Source: Bugula neritina (lineage: Eukaryota > Animalia > Bryozoa). Taken from it: a DNA stretch of 21,049 bases. A program made the translations under genes and the position numbers. Shown piece after piece: positions 365-6,453 of this stretch; position 1 is the stretch's first letter, and every line of letters begins with the position of its first letter. Location of the stretch: NCBI GenBank assembly GCA_964035545.1, contig CAXIUT010000203.1, positions 1-21,049 of the forward strand, given 5' to 3'. Below the pieces are notes generated by a model. The model did no database searches, was not told the origin of the DNA, and was given only the letters and a program-made list of their open reading frames with translations.

Positions 365-477
365 GTGGCTCATTGCAACTATCCAGTGATGAGACTATCG
401 GTGATCGTAAGGTTCAGCAAGACCGATTATTAATTGAAAGTATTACTGTTTCCGGTATTCCAGCAAAGTTAATTGTT
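361..477 (+). pseudogene. PP2C/PPM Ser/Thr phosphatase, N-terminal fragment (interrupted by mobile element)
   Basis: MSGSLQLSSDETIGDRKVQQDRLLIESITVSGIPAKLIV contains PP2C motif 1 (GxRxxQQD). It joins in frame to VADG at 2880. Confidence 0.85.
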
Positions 478-561
478 GGACGAAGCCGCTACGCGGAGAA
501 CAGCACAGCGCGTCTGATCATCTAGAATGTAACCTCACCCCTCCCGCAGGAGGGACATTCC

Positions 562-1495
562 ATGACGAATATGAGGTTACTCCCCATGAAACCATCTCCC
601 CATGAAAAATTCAACCAGGATTACCACTCTCACCTTAAACACCTAAAACTGAAAGGGCTGCAACCGAAGACGATTGATGCTTATTCGCGTGCGATTCGGT
701 GTTATTTGGCGAGTATTTTTCTTATCAGATTGACGCACTTTCTGAGCAGCAGCTAACCGATTATTTTTATCAGCGGCTTGAGACCCATTCCTGGAGTTCG
801 GTTAACCTGGATTTATACGGGTTAAAATTCTATTACCGCCACGTTTTACGAATTCCCTGGACGCATATTGACCTGATCAAGCCACCTACAGTCAAACGCC
901 TGCCGGATATTGTCACGGTTGAAGAAGCCAACCGGTTATTTCAAGCGACGCACCAACTCAGCTACAAGGTGTTCTATTTTGCGTTGTATAGCCTGGGCTT
1001 GAGGCTGGGCGAGGGGTTACGGCTAGAGGTTGGCGACATTGATGCTGCCCGCCAGCGTGTGCATATCCGCAACAGCAAAGGCAATAAGGATCGTCTGGTG
1101 CCTTTGCCCGACACGACACTCGTCGTTCTCCGGCGCTTTTGGTCAGTTCACCGCCATCCGCACCTCTTGTTCCCGAATCGTAAGGGCGGTGTGAAGCAGG
1201 CTTATAACGCCAGCACGCCACTGGATCGGGGTGGTGTGCAGAAAGCCCTTCGTCAAGTGGTGGCTGACTGTGGGATAAAAAAAAGATTACGCCGCACAGC
1301 CTGCGGCATAGCTATGCTACCCACCTGATTGAAGCCGGGGTGGATTTGCTGGAAGTCCAGAAAATCCTCGGTCACCGCAGTATTTTAACCACCAGCGGCT
1401 ATACCCAGCTCACCTCACACACGACTGACAACGCTAGCACCCAGCTTAATTCTCTGATGCGCCGTTTCAGCATTGACTGGGGGACGGTGCGATGA
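562..1495 (+). CDS. Tyrosine recombinase/integrase with N-terminal SAM-like domain; read across frameshifts at ~700 and ~1283
   Basis: Pieces: 562-~700 ([17 protein letters not shown]), 699-1283 ([20 protein letters not shown]), and -1 frame 1283-1495 ([43 protein letters not shown]). The catalytic R-K-H-R-H-Y set is complete. Start may be ATG 586. The stop overlaps the transposase ATG. Confidence 0.9.
1277..1307 (+). promoter_or_regulatory. Putative programmed -1 frameshift signal in the integrase gene
   Basis: Slippery A_AAA_AAA (1277-1283, within an A8 run), a 7-nt spacer, then the hairpin GCCGCA-cagcc-TGCGGC (1291-1307). The -1 frame encodes HxxRH and the catalytic Tyr. Confidence 0.6.
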
Positions 1496-2579
1496 TCTTA
1501 CTGTCCTCGCTGGTTCAACAGTTCAAACAACCTCTCCTTGAGCAGTATCAGGATCAATTGCTGCCTTCCCACTATAACGCGCTGAATGCGCTGGAAAAAT
1601 GCCGTACTTCTGCCAGCCCCCTGATGAAGGCCTGCTGCGATGAGTGCCAACACCCGGCTTATCTACCGCATTCCTGTGGTCACCGCTTGTGCCCTCACTG
1701 CCAACAGCATGAAAGCCAACAATGGCTGGAACGCCAGCCAGCTACAGAAACAAGTACCTGCCGATTATTTTCTAATCACGTTTACCCTGCCTGCTGAATT
1801 ACGCAGCTTGTGCTGGCACCAGCAACGCACCGTCTATCCGTTGTTATTTGAATGCGCCTGGGCGACGTTATCCGACTTCAGCCAGAATGATAAGGTCTTA
1901 AAAGGCAGGCCCGGTGCCATTGCTGTCCTGCACACTCATTCACGCCGCCTGGATTACCATCCTCATGTTCACATCGTCATGCCCGCCGCAGCGATTGATC
2001 AAACGCAGCGCTTATGGCGGGAGAAAAGCGGCCAATTCCTGTTCAGCCACAAAGCCCTGGCCAAGGTGTTTCGGGGCAAAATGCTGGCCGCAATCACGCG
2101 GGAAAATCTGTGTTTACCCGCCGGTTATCCCAAACAATGGGTGGTGGATTGCCAATGGGTCGGTCAGGGTGATAAAGCCCTGTTGTATCTGGGGCGCTAT
2201 TTATACCGGGGCGTGATTCAGGAAAAAAGACATTCTCCGCTGTGAAAACGGCCAGGTCACTTTCCGCTATCGGAACAGTAAAACCCGGCAGGATGAAATC
2301 CGAACGCTACCGGGCGCTGAGTTTCTGTTCCTGCTGCTGCGGCATGTCCTCCCGAAGGGATTCAGACGGGCGCGTAACTATGGATTCCTACACCCCAATA
2401 GTAAACGCCTGCTCGCCATCCTCCAGCGTGTACTCGGCTTTGATTCGCAAGCGATACTGGCAAAGCTGAAAAAACGTCCGCCGATACGTTGCCCGTGTTG
2501 TGGCGGGCAAATGCGTATTGTGAAAACACAGATTCCGGCCAATTCATTCAGCAACGACTGTCAGGTCGCTCTGGAATAA
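1492..2579 (+). pseudogene. IS91-family (Y2 HUH) rolling-circle transposase with N-terminal zinc-binding domain; two frameshifts
   Basis: Zn domain CRT..CDEC..HSCGHRLCPHCQ, then ITFTLP, HUH motif HPHVH, Y2 motif YLGRY, and C-terminal HVLPKGFRRARNYGFL and CPCCGG in a third frame (2229-2579). The shifts are at a duplicated CCAG (~1734-1741) and an A6 run (2223-2228). Confidence 0.88.
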
Positions 2580-2828
2580 GGCAAGGAGAAATGACGGTTA
2601 TGTAGACGGTACTTGCCAGGCTAGCGAGGCAGACGGTGGCGAATGGGGTCAAGGGGCTGACTGGGCCGGAAACCGGGGAGTTGATGTCAAATTTAGACGA
2701 AGCACTGGCTGTACCACACAAACGTTGAAATAGGGCTTCTATAAACTAGACAGCATGTCCTGTCAGGGCTGAGCAGCAAAAAGCTATTTTCATAGCAAAA
2801 CCACTCACTGTGCCAAGAGAACGGGCTT

Positions 2829-2883
2829 GTCCAACAAACGGTTCATATCGCGGCTGGGCGCGATATAACCTTATTCGTTGTGG
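2829..2883 (+). other. attC-like recombination site (55 bp)
   Basis: R'' GTCCAAC (2829-2835), 5-nt spacer, L'' GTTCATAT (2841-2848), CGCG-gctggg-CGCG, L' ATATAAC (2863-2869), 7-nt spacer, R' GTT (2877). L'' pairs with L' leaving one extra C (bottom-strand extrahelical G). Confidence 0.8.
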
Positions 2884-3701
2884 CTGACGGTGTTGGAGGC
2901 CATCAAGCAGGCGAAGTTGCCAGTACAACGGCCTATAAATCATTTAGAGATAGTATGGTGATGTCTGCAAATGAGCCAATGCTTGAGTCCAGGCTGGAAG
3001 ATGCTACACGCGCTGCTAATTCTGCAATAAGACAAGCCATTGAAGATAATCCACGACTCAAGGGTATGGGAACCACAATTGTTGCTGCAGTCATTTGTGA
3101 AAGCAGAGTTTCATGGCTCAGTGTAGGCGATTCTTTATTGCTGGTCTTACGTAAGGGGTATAGTGAGACTAAACGTCTGAATGCAGATCATTCAATGGCG
3201 GCTGTACTGGATTCACAGGTTAAACAAGGAATCGTTAGTGCTGAAGAGGCGGCAACCTCACCTAATCGCAATACACTTACATCCGCTCTTGCAGGAAGCA
3301 AGATTAATAAAGCCGATCTTCGGATTGATGGTCATATGCTTGAACCTGGTGATACTTTAGTCGTTGCCAGTGATGGTATTTTGACATTAAAAAGTATAGA
3401 AGTCGCTGATATTGTTAATAGAGCCATCTTACATGGACATCAATCTGATAAATTGGCACAAAAACTTATCAAGGCTGTTGTTGATAAGAATATCAGCGGT
3501 CAAGACAACACAGCCATTGTTTGTGCCCACTATCCTGGGTACAAACAAAAAAATCTCCCAGTTAATAGGGGTGCAAATAAACTTCAACCTACAAGAAAAA
3601 AGTTTAGCCCTCTAATCTTACCGATTATTTTTATATGCCTCCTTGCGGGAATTTATTTTTCTTATAATTTTTACAAGAACTCGATATCTGAGAGCCTTTA
3701 A
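2880..3701 (+). CDS. PP2C/PPM Ser/Thr protein phosphatase, C-terminal part, with C-terminal transmembrane helix
   Basis: Motifs VADGVGGH, GMGTT, SVGDS, DHS, ASDG and GQDN, then hydrophobic PLILPIIFICLLAGIYFSY. Motif 1 is missing here and lies at 361-477. Confidence 0.93.
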   Translation: MADGVGGHQAGEVASTTAYKSFRDSMVMSANEPMLESRLEDATRAANSAIRQAIEDNPRLKGMGTTIVAAVICESRVSWLSVGDSLLLVLRKGYSETKRLNADHSMAAVLDSQVKQGIVSAEEAATSPNRNTLTSALAGSKINKADLRIDGHMLEPGDTLVVASDGILTLKSIEVADIVNRAILHGHQSDKLAQKLIKAVVDKNISGQDNTAIVCAHYPGYKQKNLPVNRGANKLQPTRKKFSPLILPIIFICLLAGIYFSYNFYKNSISESL

Positions 3702-4047: not shown

Positions 4048-6453
4048 ATGAATCAAAGCCCCGGGGCGCTTCCTATTGGAACCATCGTTGATAATTATAG
4101 AATTGATAGTATCCTTGGCCAAGGTGGTTTCGGTATTACTTACCTCGCGCATCATATAAATCTCAATAGCCGTGTCGCAATTAAAGAAAGTTTTATTAGC
4201 GCTTTATCCATTAGGAATACCAATAGAATAACAGTCCATCCAAATCCGGATGGAAAAGACGCTTTCGAGAAGGCTACAAATAGATTTCTTAATGAGGCCA
4301 AGAGGGTTTGCGAGTTAAAACACTCAAATATCATAAAAGTTAGTAATTTTTTTAGAGCCAATAATACCGCCTATATGGTGCTTGAGTATATTAACGGTAT
4401 TACACTAGAGGATTGGCTTAATAAGCTTGATCGCCCACCAACCAGACAAGAAATAAAAAATATTACTGTGCCATTACTTGATGCATTGGAGTACATGCAT
4501 AGCCAAAAAATGCTGCATCGTGATATTGCACCAGATAATATTATCATTCGACCTGATAATGACCCTTGCTTAATAGATTTTGGTTCTGCTCGTTATTTTA
4601 CTGCCAGAAACAGTCATTTGTTAACAGCTATAGCAAAACCAGGATATTCTCCTCCTGAACAATGGGTAAGCAAGAGTGGGGCACATGGGCCATGGTCTGA
4701 TATTTATGCTTTTGGCGCTACACTTTATCGCGTAATCACTGGTGAAAATCCATCTTGTGCAACTGTTCGTACAGTGAGCATTGGAGAAGAGGGGACTGAT
4801 AGTCTTCTTCCTGCAAGCAGTTCGGTTCCTCATGATATTTATCAACAACCTTTTCTTGATGCGATAGATAATGCCTTGATGTTGAGGCGTGCTGATCGTC
4901 CCCGGAGTATTGATGCATGGCGGAAACAGTTATTTACAGGGCATACAGAGAAGGAGGAGTCTAAGTGTCAAACTGAAAACACACAGTCTGATGAAGCAGC
5001 TCCAGATGAAAGCACTCTAACGGATACCCTGCCGCTAGGTACCATCGTGGATCGCTACAAGATTGAAAAGGTACTGGGCCGAGGTGGTTTTGGTATCACT
5101 TATTTAGCACGTCACATTGAGCTGGGTACTAAAGTGGCATTAAAAGAAAGTTACCCAACAGCTGTGTCTGGCCGTGATACCACTACCAGCAGGATTTACC
5201 CAATTCAAACAAAAGAATTTGAGAAAATAACAAAGTGGTTCAAAGGCGAAGCTGACACCTTAAGAAGATTCAATCATCCCAATATTGTTAAAGTCACTGA
5301 TTTTTTTCATGCTAATGATACAGCTTATATGGCAATGGAGTTTATTGAAGGCTGTACGTTTGAAGAGTGGCTAAATAAACTCAATCGACCACCAACACAG
5401 GAAGAATTGGATAAAATTACAGAGCCGCTATTGGATGCATTGGAACAAGTGCATAAAGAGATATTGCACCGTGATATTGCACCAGACAATATTATCATTC
5501 GACCTGATGGTACGCCTTGTCTGATTGACTTTGGTTCGGCTCGGTTTTTCACTGCGGGTCAATCTAACCTTCTCTCTGTAATCGTAAAGCAAGGTTATTC
5601 TCCTCCTGAACAAATTGTTAAATATAGTAAAGCCCATGGCCCATGGTCTGATATTTATTCTTTTGGAGCGACACTTTATCGTGCTGTAACTGGGAATGTT
5701 CCGTTGGGGGCACAGGATCGTTCTGATGAAGATGGGGATAGTCTTGTGCCTGCTGTTGAAGCGGCTCCTAAAGGTATGTATCGGCGTGAATTTTTGCAGG
5801 CTATTGATCAGTCTCTGAAGCTTGTGCGGACGAAGAGACCACAAACTGCAACAGAATGGGGGGGCGAGTTATTTAGGGTAAAAGAATTTGTGAGCCAATC
5901 TGTTCTACCTTCTGGTTTTCAGTTTTCGGCAGAGCAGCTATTCTGGGGGGCAGCTGGAATTTTTTCAGGGGTGTTGATTCATTTGACATCTACAAGCGCC
6001 TTGGCTTCTCTGGGAGTATCTTTATTATCAGTAATCTTTTTTATTAAATATTTTGCAAAGGAGAGTTGGTGGACAGCTTTAGCCTTGATTTTCAAATTAA
6101 TATTAATAACGTTGCCCTATAGTATTTTTTTTCTACCAATAACTGGCTCTGTTGAATTGGAAATATACAGCATTGATGACTGGGCGTTTTTTGCATCCTT
6201 ATATCCACTGTTATATTTTCCACTAATATTTTCGATGATAATTACCTTTTATAGAAAAAAGAAGGTGTTTAGCTTGAGCTTGTTAAAATTTTATGCAATA
6301 TCTTTTTCTGTTGCTGCATTATGGTATCTTATCTTAGGCCCTCTCCCTTCTTTTTTTGATGAAGTGGAAATAAATTTAAATGCTTTTTACCCTGCATCAG
6401 TCTTTTCTATCTTATGGGTATTTACAGTTATTTTCCTAAAAAAAAGAGGTTAA
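4048..6453 (+). CDS. Membrane-anchored Hanks-type Ser/Thr kinase with two tandem kinase domains
   Basis: Two copies each of LGxGGFG, VAxKE, HRDIAPDN, DFG, GYSPPEQ and WSDIY. About six hydrophobic segments at the C-terminus. AAAGGTGAG RBS-like sequence upstream. Confidence 0.95.
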   Translation: MNQSPGALPIGTIVDNYRIDSILGQGGFGITYLAHHINLNSRVAIKESFISALSIRNTNRITVHPNPDGKDAFEKATNRFLNEAKRVCELKHSNIIKVSNFFRANNTAYMVLEYINGITLEDWLNKLDRPPTRQEIKNITVPLLDALEYMHSQKMLHRDIAPDNIIIRPDNDPCLIDFGSARYFTARNSHLLTAIAKPGYSPPEQWVSKSGAHGPWSDIYAFGATLYRVITGENPSCATVRTVSIGEEGTDSLLPASSSVPHDIYQQPFLDAIDNALMLRRADRPRSIDAWRKQLFTGHTEKEESKCQTENTQSDEAAPDESTLTDTLPLGTIVDRYKIEKVLGRGGFGITYLARHIELGTKVALKESYPTAVSGRDTTTSRIYPIQTKEFEKITKWFKGEADTLRRFNHPNIVKVTDFFHANDTAYMAMEFIEGCTFEEWLNKLNRPPTQEELDKITEPLLDALEQVHKEILHRDIAPDNIIIRPDGTPCLIDFGSARFFTAGQSNLLSVIVKQGYSPPEQIVKYSKAHGPWSDIYSFGATLYRAVTGNVPLGAQDRSDEDGDSLVPAVEAAPKGMYRREFLQAIDQSLKLVRTKRPQTATEWGGELFRVKEFVSQSVLPSGFQFSAEQLFWGAAGIFSGVLIHLTSTSALASLGVSLLSVIFFIKYFAKESWWTALALIFKLILITLPYSIFFLPITGSVELEIYSIDDWAFFASLYPLLYFPLIFSMIITFYRKKKVFSLSLLKFYAISFSVAALWYLILGPLPSFFDEVEINLNAFYPASVFSILWVFTVIFLKKRG

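Follow-up and report, generated by a model that had tools for sequence, protein, structure and literature searches.

ISfinder holds members of the IS91 family that carry an upstream 'phage integrase' open reading frame (ORF), namely ISShvi3, ISSod25, ISAzo26 and ISWz1. That such recombinases can be classed beside the integron integrase IntI is also already known (bioRxiv 10.1101/542381). Here, we describe an element of this kind from a contig of the Bugula neritina assembly GCA_964035545.1 (CAXIUT010000203.1, 21,049 nucleotides, analysed at full length and called the window below). The window is an entire 21-kb bacterial contig (C212) in an assembly of 216 Mb and 321 contigs. Judging by its sequence, the element appears to be a decayed copy of a widespread IS91-family subgroup, which encodes an IntI-like tyrosine recombinase and an overlapping Y2 HUH transposase. 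To the existing picture, our analysis adds that both ends of the element together would form an attC-shaped fold, that the recombinase is closest to IntI, and that the family homes to attC sites of integrons in a strict orientation.

The nearest described template is IS91 itself, which inserts without target duplication, has a target tetranucleotide beside oriIS and carries an upstream ORF overlapping tnpA; its terIS combines a palindrome with an element-borne cleavage tetranucleotide, and only a bottom-strand circle is inserted (PMC13181058). With IS91, IS801 and IS1294, the window element and its relatives share the Y2 HUH transposase, the lack of target duplication and an upstream ORF whose stop overlaps the start of tnpA. 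Likewise, a target tetranucleotide lies at the end downstream of tnpA, an element tetranucleotide with a palindrome lies at the upstream end, subterminal palindromes are present at both ends (oriIS and terIS, as in the window element), and tandem and circle-type junctions occur. However, the window family uses YAAC and CAAC (bottom strand) instead of the GTTC, CTTG or CTCG of IS91, its upstream ORF encodes an IntI-like recombinase and not Orf121, and it prefers attC as a target. Moreover, while the repeats of IS91 and IS1294 abut the termini, the right repeat of the window family lies 48 nt inward, with a bulged hairpin in between.

Seen from the side of integrons, the element resembles attC sites and cassettes in its RYYYAAC ... 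GTTRRRY boxes, in the unpaired 4-6-nt spacer on each side, in a crossover within GTT, and in the extra base of its L-box stem (a G when the bottom strand is read), the left end supplying R' after circularisation; the nearest relative of its recombinase is IntI. Unlike a typical attC, it has a single extrahelical base, its loop is short and its spacer hardly varies, and its end scores 8.5-13.6 bits on an attC model against 22-56 for real attCs. Unlike an integron cassette, it carries its own HUH enzyme and a recombinase without the IntI insertion, and it enters R'' antiparallel as well as many non-attC sites. The IS1111-attC group and the group IIC-attC introns also home to attC in cassette arrays with a fixed orientation, the introns lying antiparallel to cassettes like the window family (PMC9229058, PMC3001079); but their enzymes are unrelated (a DEDD transposase and a ribozyme with reverse transcriptase, respectively), and they have no attC-like terminal fold. 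In CTX-phi and IMEX, a HUH Rep makes a single-strand circle, whose folded strand is integrated by XerCD at dif through a one-strand exchange, giving integrated tandem copies. These systems differ in relying on a host recombinase, in having dif as the target and in being phages, and the same route for the window element is an analogy.

The element itself occupies positions 475-2876, i.e., 2.4 kb, and interrupts a PP2C-type phosphatase gene; it is followed by a GTT at 2877-2879 that is common to element and target (all features described here lie on the + strand). We place the limits there because one GTT restores the PP2C frame and a homologue is continuous at this point. Excising 475-2876 leaves a single GTT and an in-frame gene reading ...LIVVADGVGGH, and the homologue, 44% identical, has LAVVADGMGGH where the window gene is interrupted. 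The 5' part of the gene (361-474, 38 codons) ends in ...AATT; its frame resumes through the one GTT into the 3' part (2880-3701), which is recognised by reading frame and homologue. The crossover lies inside or at the edge of the three shared bases, with the fourth base being target-derived on the right and element-derived on the left. In the initial annotation, the element had been drawn as 475-2883; it stops at 2876, and 2877-2883 is target DNA. The same annotation rightly named the GTTG core as the sole junction repeat, since nothing beyond GTT(G) is repeated at the junctions of the window copy.

Its left end (475-500), which is terIS-like, opens with GTTGGAC (475-481), an R'-like box, followed by a small hairpin, CCGC-TAC-GCGG (486-496), so that the whole reads GTTGGAC GAA GCCGC-TAC-GCGG; a left end of the form GTTGRAC[GT]AAGCCGC-loop-GCGG is kept in all homologues. 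The right end is more elaborate. An inner inverted repeat, GGCTT-GTCCAAC (2824-2835), contains the R''-like box GTCCAAC (2829-2835), complementary to the left end. After the spacer AAAC (2836-2839) comes an imperfect, L-box-like hairpin (2840-2870) in which GGTT[C]ATATCGCG faces CGCGATATAACC: GGTT at 2840-2843, a bulged C at 2844 (G on the bottom strand), ATATCGCG at 2845-2852, a loop at 2853-2858, CGCGATAT at 2859-2866 and AACC at 2867-2870. Next comes the terminal spacer TTATTC (2871-2876), which hardly varies among family members (CTTATTY). When the inner box is read on the opposite strand (GTTGGACAAGCC), it forms with the left end (GTTGGACGAAGCC) an inverted repeat of 12-13 nt; this repeat reaches the terminus at the left but lies 48 nt inside it at the right. 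Hence, the claim that no terminal inverted repeats are evident is not entirely correct.

In the single window copy, the hairpin does only modestly better than shuffled sequences, with z -1.3 for the + strand and -2.5 for the - strand. Among homologues, the picture is much clearer. Over 28 right ends, 90.4% of the stem cells are paired, against 28-44% in slid controls; compensatory double changes occur in 9 of the 12 stem pairs, and none of 500 shuffles did as well. The two boxes covary, too, being GTTGGAC/GTCCAAC in most elements and GTTGAAC/GTTCAAC in six lineages, including L081, which is otherwise of core type; in two mixed cases, a G:T pair is possible on the bottom strand only. The architecture is not due to chance, because it is present in every complete homologue examined, and we take the end fold to be a real family trait, as such covariation indicates. 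Thus, the attC-like arrangement proposed for the right end, including an R'' that is the exact reverse complement of the left end, can be found in full in the sequence and is conserved and covarying in homologues, and the GTTRRRY start (here GTTGRAC) and covarying hairpin end expected of other copies recur across more than 60 loci.

With the recombinase as the query, 80 loci having the layout were gathered from one-genome-per-species contigs, 490 of the first 600 candidates being relatives. It is kept in more than 60 homologous loci from Gamma- and Betaproteobacteria, Desulfobacterota, Cyanobacteriota and others, and every member of the family across phyla retains the recombinase gene. Plasmid relatives from Photobacterium, E. 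coli and Salinivibrio, at 45-48% protein identity, have the same layout. It is also found in a Pseudoalteromonas member with 26% recombinase identity and in Vibrio and Legionella copies, with stem sequences that are wholly different. The bulged base differs between groups: core-family elements have C on the top strand and hence G on the bottom, and Vibrionaceae copies have A and T, respectively.

The most crowded genome is the complete chromosome of a Methyloprofundus metagenome-assembled genome (G001, the genome of locus L051 and of L099-L135), with at least 47 copies that are 100% identical. At least nine head-to-tail tandems share one common GTT, and one of them is a triple; such GTT-sharing tandems are compatible with a rolling-circle bottom-strand circle without being proof of it. 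Eight copies sit in an identical repeated target (tttgtttccgctagaaaagcga / GTTGTGGATGGT), and therefore in these cases the element lies within another repeat. In the window's own assembly, no second copy of the element was found, nor was near-identical DNA found in plasmids or E. coli genomes.

Insertion follows a strict rule. It occurs without target duplication at TT/GTTR, with GTT used at 41 of the 42 distinct sites and at all 47 in G001, just as the initial annotation had anticipated. In the target logo of the 42 distinct sites, GTT is invariant, TT precedes it at -2/-1 in 33-34, and A or G stands at +4. At the right, the base that follows GTT differs even among identical copies, whereas at the left it is constant (GTTG), and the bottom strand reads target-YAAC / element ... 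CAAC / flank. This junction logic matches that of IS91 exactly, with another tetranucleotide (PMC13181058), which runs counter to the earlier proposal that the element is something other than a classical IS91.

Farther upstream, the target sites resemble the reverse complement of the attC L'' box, and many reconstructed empty sites fold into complete attC hairpins. In at least 28 loci, a covariance model finds an attC that ends exactly on the left GTT of the element, and all attC matches in oriented loci (57 of 57) are on the strand opposite to the element. A telling case is the E. coli IncC plasmid RCS41_p, where the element splits R'' (GTCTAAC) of the aadA1 attC in a class 1 integron. Most relatives occupy real attC sites, R'' being a strongly preferred target, which the initial annotation had not foreseen. 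Thus, R'' of attC is where the core family homes, in antiparallel orientation to the cassettes, and plain TT/GTTR sites, including that in the PP2C gene of the window, serve as secondary targets. Although attC makes up a tiny share of TTGTTR sites, about half of the insertions across genomes are in attC. An integron cassette moved by IntI would be expected in parallel with the array, at attI or at the R' of the attC before it, whereas core-family members lie at R'' and antiparallel in all 57 cases. As to the earlier idea of a cassette inserted at a secondary site, the window site is indeed a plain TT/GTTR, but the element sits in a PP2C gene and is not a parallel cassette in an array. Relative to the local GC skew, 14 elements in G001 are oriented as leading and 19 as lagging (p 0.49), a noisy comparison in a rearranged genome rich in insertion sequences, and fork-targeted single-strand insertion gains no support from it.

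Both genes expected in the element, a recombinase and an IS91 Y2 transposase, were confirmed by translation and profile searches. The recombinase gene (562-1495), read by three-frame translation, combines PF00589 with a SAM-like N-domain, and its stop overlaps the start of tnpA (ATGA, 1492-1495). The transposase gene (1492-2578) encodes the N-terminal zinc-binding domain and the catalytic part of a Y2 HUH enzyme of the IS91 family (Zn_Tnp_IS91 and Y2_Tnp; PF14319 at 4e-19, PF04986 at 2e-23 and 6e-14), with the motifs HPHVH and YLGRY; its central piece matches NF033538 with 190 bits (cutoff 125). For the recombinase piece, the best NCBIfam match is TIGR02249, the integron integrase, at 81 bits against a cutoff of 265, and its closest solved structures are archaeal XerA, VchIntIA (IntI4) and XerD. 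The alignment with IntI4 breaks in two, and, because 17 residues of the window protein oppose 57 of IntI4, the IntI-specific additional domain is absent. In this respect, the window recombinase agrees with the 'integron-like' subgroup of IS91-borne recombinases, which lack the IntI insertion (bioRxiv 10.1101/542381).

Each of the two genes contains two frame changes. The recombinase is broken by 1-nt insertions at 703 and 705, and two changes break tnpA, namely a 4-nt duplication (CCAG, 1733) and a surplus A at about 2223. For comparison, we used the contigs of four public runs. The consensus in run X6 and in three others lacks the extra bases at 703, 705, 1733 (all four of them) and 2223; these indels are specific either to the window copy or to its assembly, which collapsed contigs cannot separate. 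Read depth over the element in run X6 is about tenfold that over its flanks, and one collapsed contig there extends exactly from 475 to 2879. Because of the three copy-specific frameshift sites, the window copy is probably inactive.

The remaining frame change, at an A8 run in the recombinase gene (1277-1284; A_AAA_AAA followed by G, where the reading frame moves by -1), is of another nature. We had considered all four frame changes as decay, an explanation rejected because the A8 site is kept family-wide and is unchanged in every run examined. At the same place, between the motifs KDR and HSLRH, the frame changes at an A7-A9 run in about 27 of 38 distinct core-family elements (seen in L011-L078); copies with A8-G shift by -1, and several with A9-T by +1. 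The Vibrionaceae and E. coli relatives encode the recombinase in a single frame, and a -1 slip on A_AAA_AAA makes the window protein collinear with them. Hence, the A8 run looks like a conserved recoding site that would limit the amount of full-length recombinase by programmed frameshifting or transcriptional slippage. The full-length protein is under selection, because the region after the A-run is conserved in the shifted frame.

How far the end of the element is an attC was addressed with a covariance model that we built from 17 attCs at and near element sites and that leans to one attC type. On real attCs it had not seen (aadA2, cmlA1, aac(6')-Ib, blaIMP-6, arr and array neighbours), the model gives 22-56 bits. 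It aligns the window end from the first to the last position on the + strand, placing the bulged C on an extrahelical column; one extrahelical base is present and the second is absent. The boxes are those of an attC, GTCCAAC standing for R'' (RYYYAAC) and the complementary GTTGGAC for R' (GTTRRRY), with the crossover in GTT. Nevertheless, recognition by an attC covariance model, which the initial annotation had put forward as a check, was not achieved, as the end received 8.5 bits with this 17-site model. Canonical IS91 and IS1294 ends give no match with the model. Because of the low score, the single extrahelical base and the nearly invariant CTTATTC spacer, we regard the end only as attC-shaped, that is, as attC-like rather than a demonstrated attC.

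An instructive relative is L093 (2130-3593) of the E. coli plasmid pE033_IMP6, found in 11 records when 10 similar IMP-6 plasmids of the pKPI-6 type are included. It has an IS91-like gene without a recombinase; its left end consists of GTTGAAC and a small palindrome, its right end of an inner GTTCAAC box, a hairpin and GTT. L093 is a genuine class 1 integron cassette, parallel to an array of aac(6')-Ib, blaIMP-6, aadA2, the L093 gene and the 3'-conserved segment (3'-CS); it is flanked by the aadA2 attC and the 3'-CS, and its own end scores 26.7 bits.

From the junctions and the two enzymes, we infer the following course of transposition. As in IS91, the HUH transposase would first nick next to the right end, behind the YAAC of the bottom strand; this strand would then be peeled off until the element's own left-hand CAAC is reached, so that a bottom-strand circle results. 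The junction of the circle would read CTTATTC-GTT-GGACGAAG, and in it GTCCAAC would pair with GTTGGAC around the bulged hairpin to produce an attC-shaped fold. The IntI-like recombinase might then help to find attC and to join at GTT, either by an integron-type single-strand exchange or by guiding the transposase, with plain TTGTTR sites, such as that in the PP2C gene, used as secondary targets. CTX-phi may be taken as a working precedent for such a hybrid of HUH and Xer-type steps. We give this reading, in which a HUH-made circle with an attC-shaped junction is combined with a recombinase taking part in attC recognition and GTT joining, about an even chance of being correct.

Several observations weigh against it. 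The IS91 transposase excises and integrates on its own (PMC13181058). Sequence alone cannot tell which of the two enzymes does the joining, and integration by the recombinase instead of the transposase is, as in the initial annotation, an inference. The recombinase lacks the IntI helix that reads extrahelical bases, and the attC score of the window end is not significant (8.5 bits, E 4.2 over the 21-kb window), with the natural tandem junction reaching 13.6 bits. The near-invariance of the CTTATTC spacer is more in keeping with a HUH nick site than with an attC spacer, and box covariation would also be expected if one protein simply bound both boxes. As L093 shows, the layout needs no element-borne recombinase, although a host IntI1 is at hand there. 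In G001, 7-8 of about 33 independent sites are attC, and about three quarters are not. Finally, circle or empty-site joints were absent from the contigs of the four public runs, which are uninformative on rare forms.

Much of this would be equally at home in a classical IS91 scheme, in which the HUH transposase alone starts at the right end (oriIS), ends at the left (terIS) and inserts the circle after YAAC of a single-stranded target. The top strands of attC might then be favoured because YAAC, a spacer and an imperfect hairpin mimic the element's own origin, and the recombinase would be an accessory that neither selects nor joins the target: a regulator like Orf121 of IS91, a tandem resolver or a helper in forming double-strand circles. 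The absence of duplication, the constant CAAC at the left and variable YAAC at the right, the subterminal palindromes and the upstream ORF overlapping tnpA all fit this scheme, as do the invariant terminal spacer, the many secondary TTGTTR sites outside attC, and the integrase-less L093 with the same ends. So do an end that falls below attC by our covariance model, a recombinase without the IntI insertion, and an A-run at which most translation of the core-family recombinase would halt before the catalytic His and Tyr. Still, the recombinase gene is present in every member across phyla, and its post-frameshift part is conserved in the shifted frame; attC receives about half of the insertions despite its minute share of TTGTTR sites; the orientation bias with GC skew seen in HUH elements that target single-stranded DNA at forks is not apparent (14 versus 19, p 0.49, noisy as the test is); and canonical IS91 and IS1294 ends lack the subterminal box and hairpin. 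We therefore treat the transposase-only scheme as a serious possibility, although not as the probable one. It is also tempting to suppose that these elements are autonomous 'self-made cassettes', whose HUH-made circle undergoes a one-strand exchange between the element junction and the attC top strand, performed by the recombinase in spite of its missing reader of extrahelical bases; we think this rather unlikely.

It might alternatively be argued that the element is a passive integron cassette, its attC-like end being acted on by a host IntI and its genes being cargo or relics. L093, sitting with 26.7 bits as a cassette between the aadA2 attC and the 3'-CS, points in this direction, and so does a Shewanella study in which ISShvi3 beside an attC gives 'a new gene cassette structure' (PMC9229058). 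Two members of a divergent subfamily, L007 (1822-4153) and L090 (1841-4151), with the left end GTTGAACTAAGCC, can be added: they run parallel to a cassette just downstream (DUF4238 and arr, respectively), after which an attC follows on the same strand, so that their orientation is opposite to that of the core family. But the core family lies antiparallel in R'' (57 of 57), a box into which IntI puts no cassettes; one chromosome has at least 47 identical copies scattered over non-attC sites; the window site is within a phosphatase gene; and the ends score far below real attCs. Passive carriage is, in our view, highly improbable for the core family. That the hairpin and box complementarity are a functionless chance resemblance or an assembly artefact has hardly any probability left. 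The + strand fold of the single window copy is, admittedly, no better than shuffles (z -1.3), but the architecture is kept over more than 60 loci, hairpin and boxes covary, and an independent collapsed contig (475-2879, run X6) reproduces the boundaries, which together rule this explanation out.

In the openly searchable literature, we found no description of the attC-shaped junction with its covariation, of the R''-directed antiparallel homing or of the recoding site. A search of the same literature for an 'IS91-attC' description returned only the remark on ISShvi3 (PMC9229058) and the recombinase classification (10.1101/542381). Our favoured reading, that of a HUH-made circle whose attC-shaped junction is handled with the help of the recombinase, bears on the role of the upstream recombinase in IS91 elements and on the origin of integron attC sites and cassettes. 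Moreover, the class 1 integron in which the copy of the E. coli IncC plasmid lies is a clinical one. With this family, one could ask if the HUH enzyme and the integron-like recombinase work together on single-stranded DNA in its folded form, and in what way attC-homing elements break up or remodel cassette arrays; for such studies, there is a genome in which at least 47 copies are identical, as well as read sets in which copies are intact. Should the elements turn out to be self-made cassettes after all, they would represent present-day kin of the ancestor from which the integron recombination module (IntI and attC) arose, a source of, or parasite on, cassette arrays, and a third kind of attC-homing element.

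Some minor features of the family and the locus deserve mention. Between tnpA and the right-end structure, the window element has a non-coding right arm (2579-2828), which is partly conserved in the solo right-end fragment L040 (3070-3180). Solo right ends without genes, consisting of the inner box, hairpin, CTTATTC and GTT, lie beside unrelated ORFs in L040 (3070-3180) and L008 (3501-3740). Those of L040 (3121-3180) and L008 are probably remnants or products of incomplete transposition, not cassettes. Other copies of the E. coli relative were not found, except for a 240-bp solo right end in Shewanella ANA-3. A gene for a group II intron reverse transcriptase/maturase (ltrA; L002, 61-1533) lies 0.8 kb upstream of the Photobacterium damselae copy. 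In run X6, near window position 2881, one contig goes on after ...CTTATTCGTTGT with ACGAAGTAACAC..., which resembles the tandem junction (GTTGGACGAAGCC) without being one; possibly, this contig contains a second, related element.

Around the insertion in the window, an FHA-domain gene lies upstream of the PP2C-type phosphatase gene, and a large Ser/Thr kinase gene lies downstream. The latter (4048-6453), following the FHA and PP2C genes, encodes an 801-amino-acid protein with two stretches matching a protein kinase domain model. By gene content, the locus appears to be an FHA/phosphatase/kinase signalling trio whose phosphatase has been disabled by the insertion of the element.

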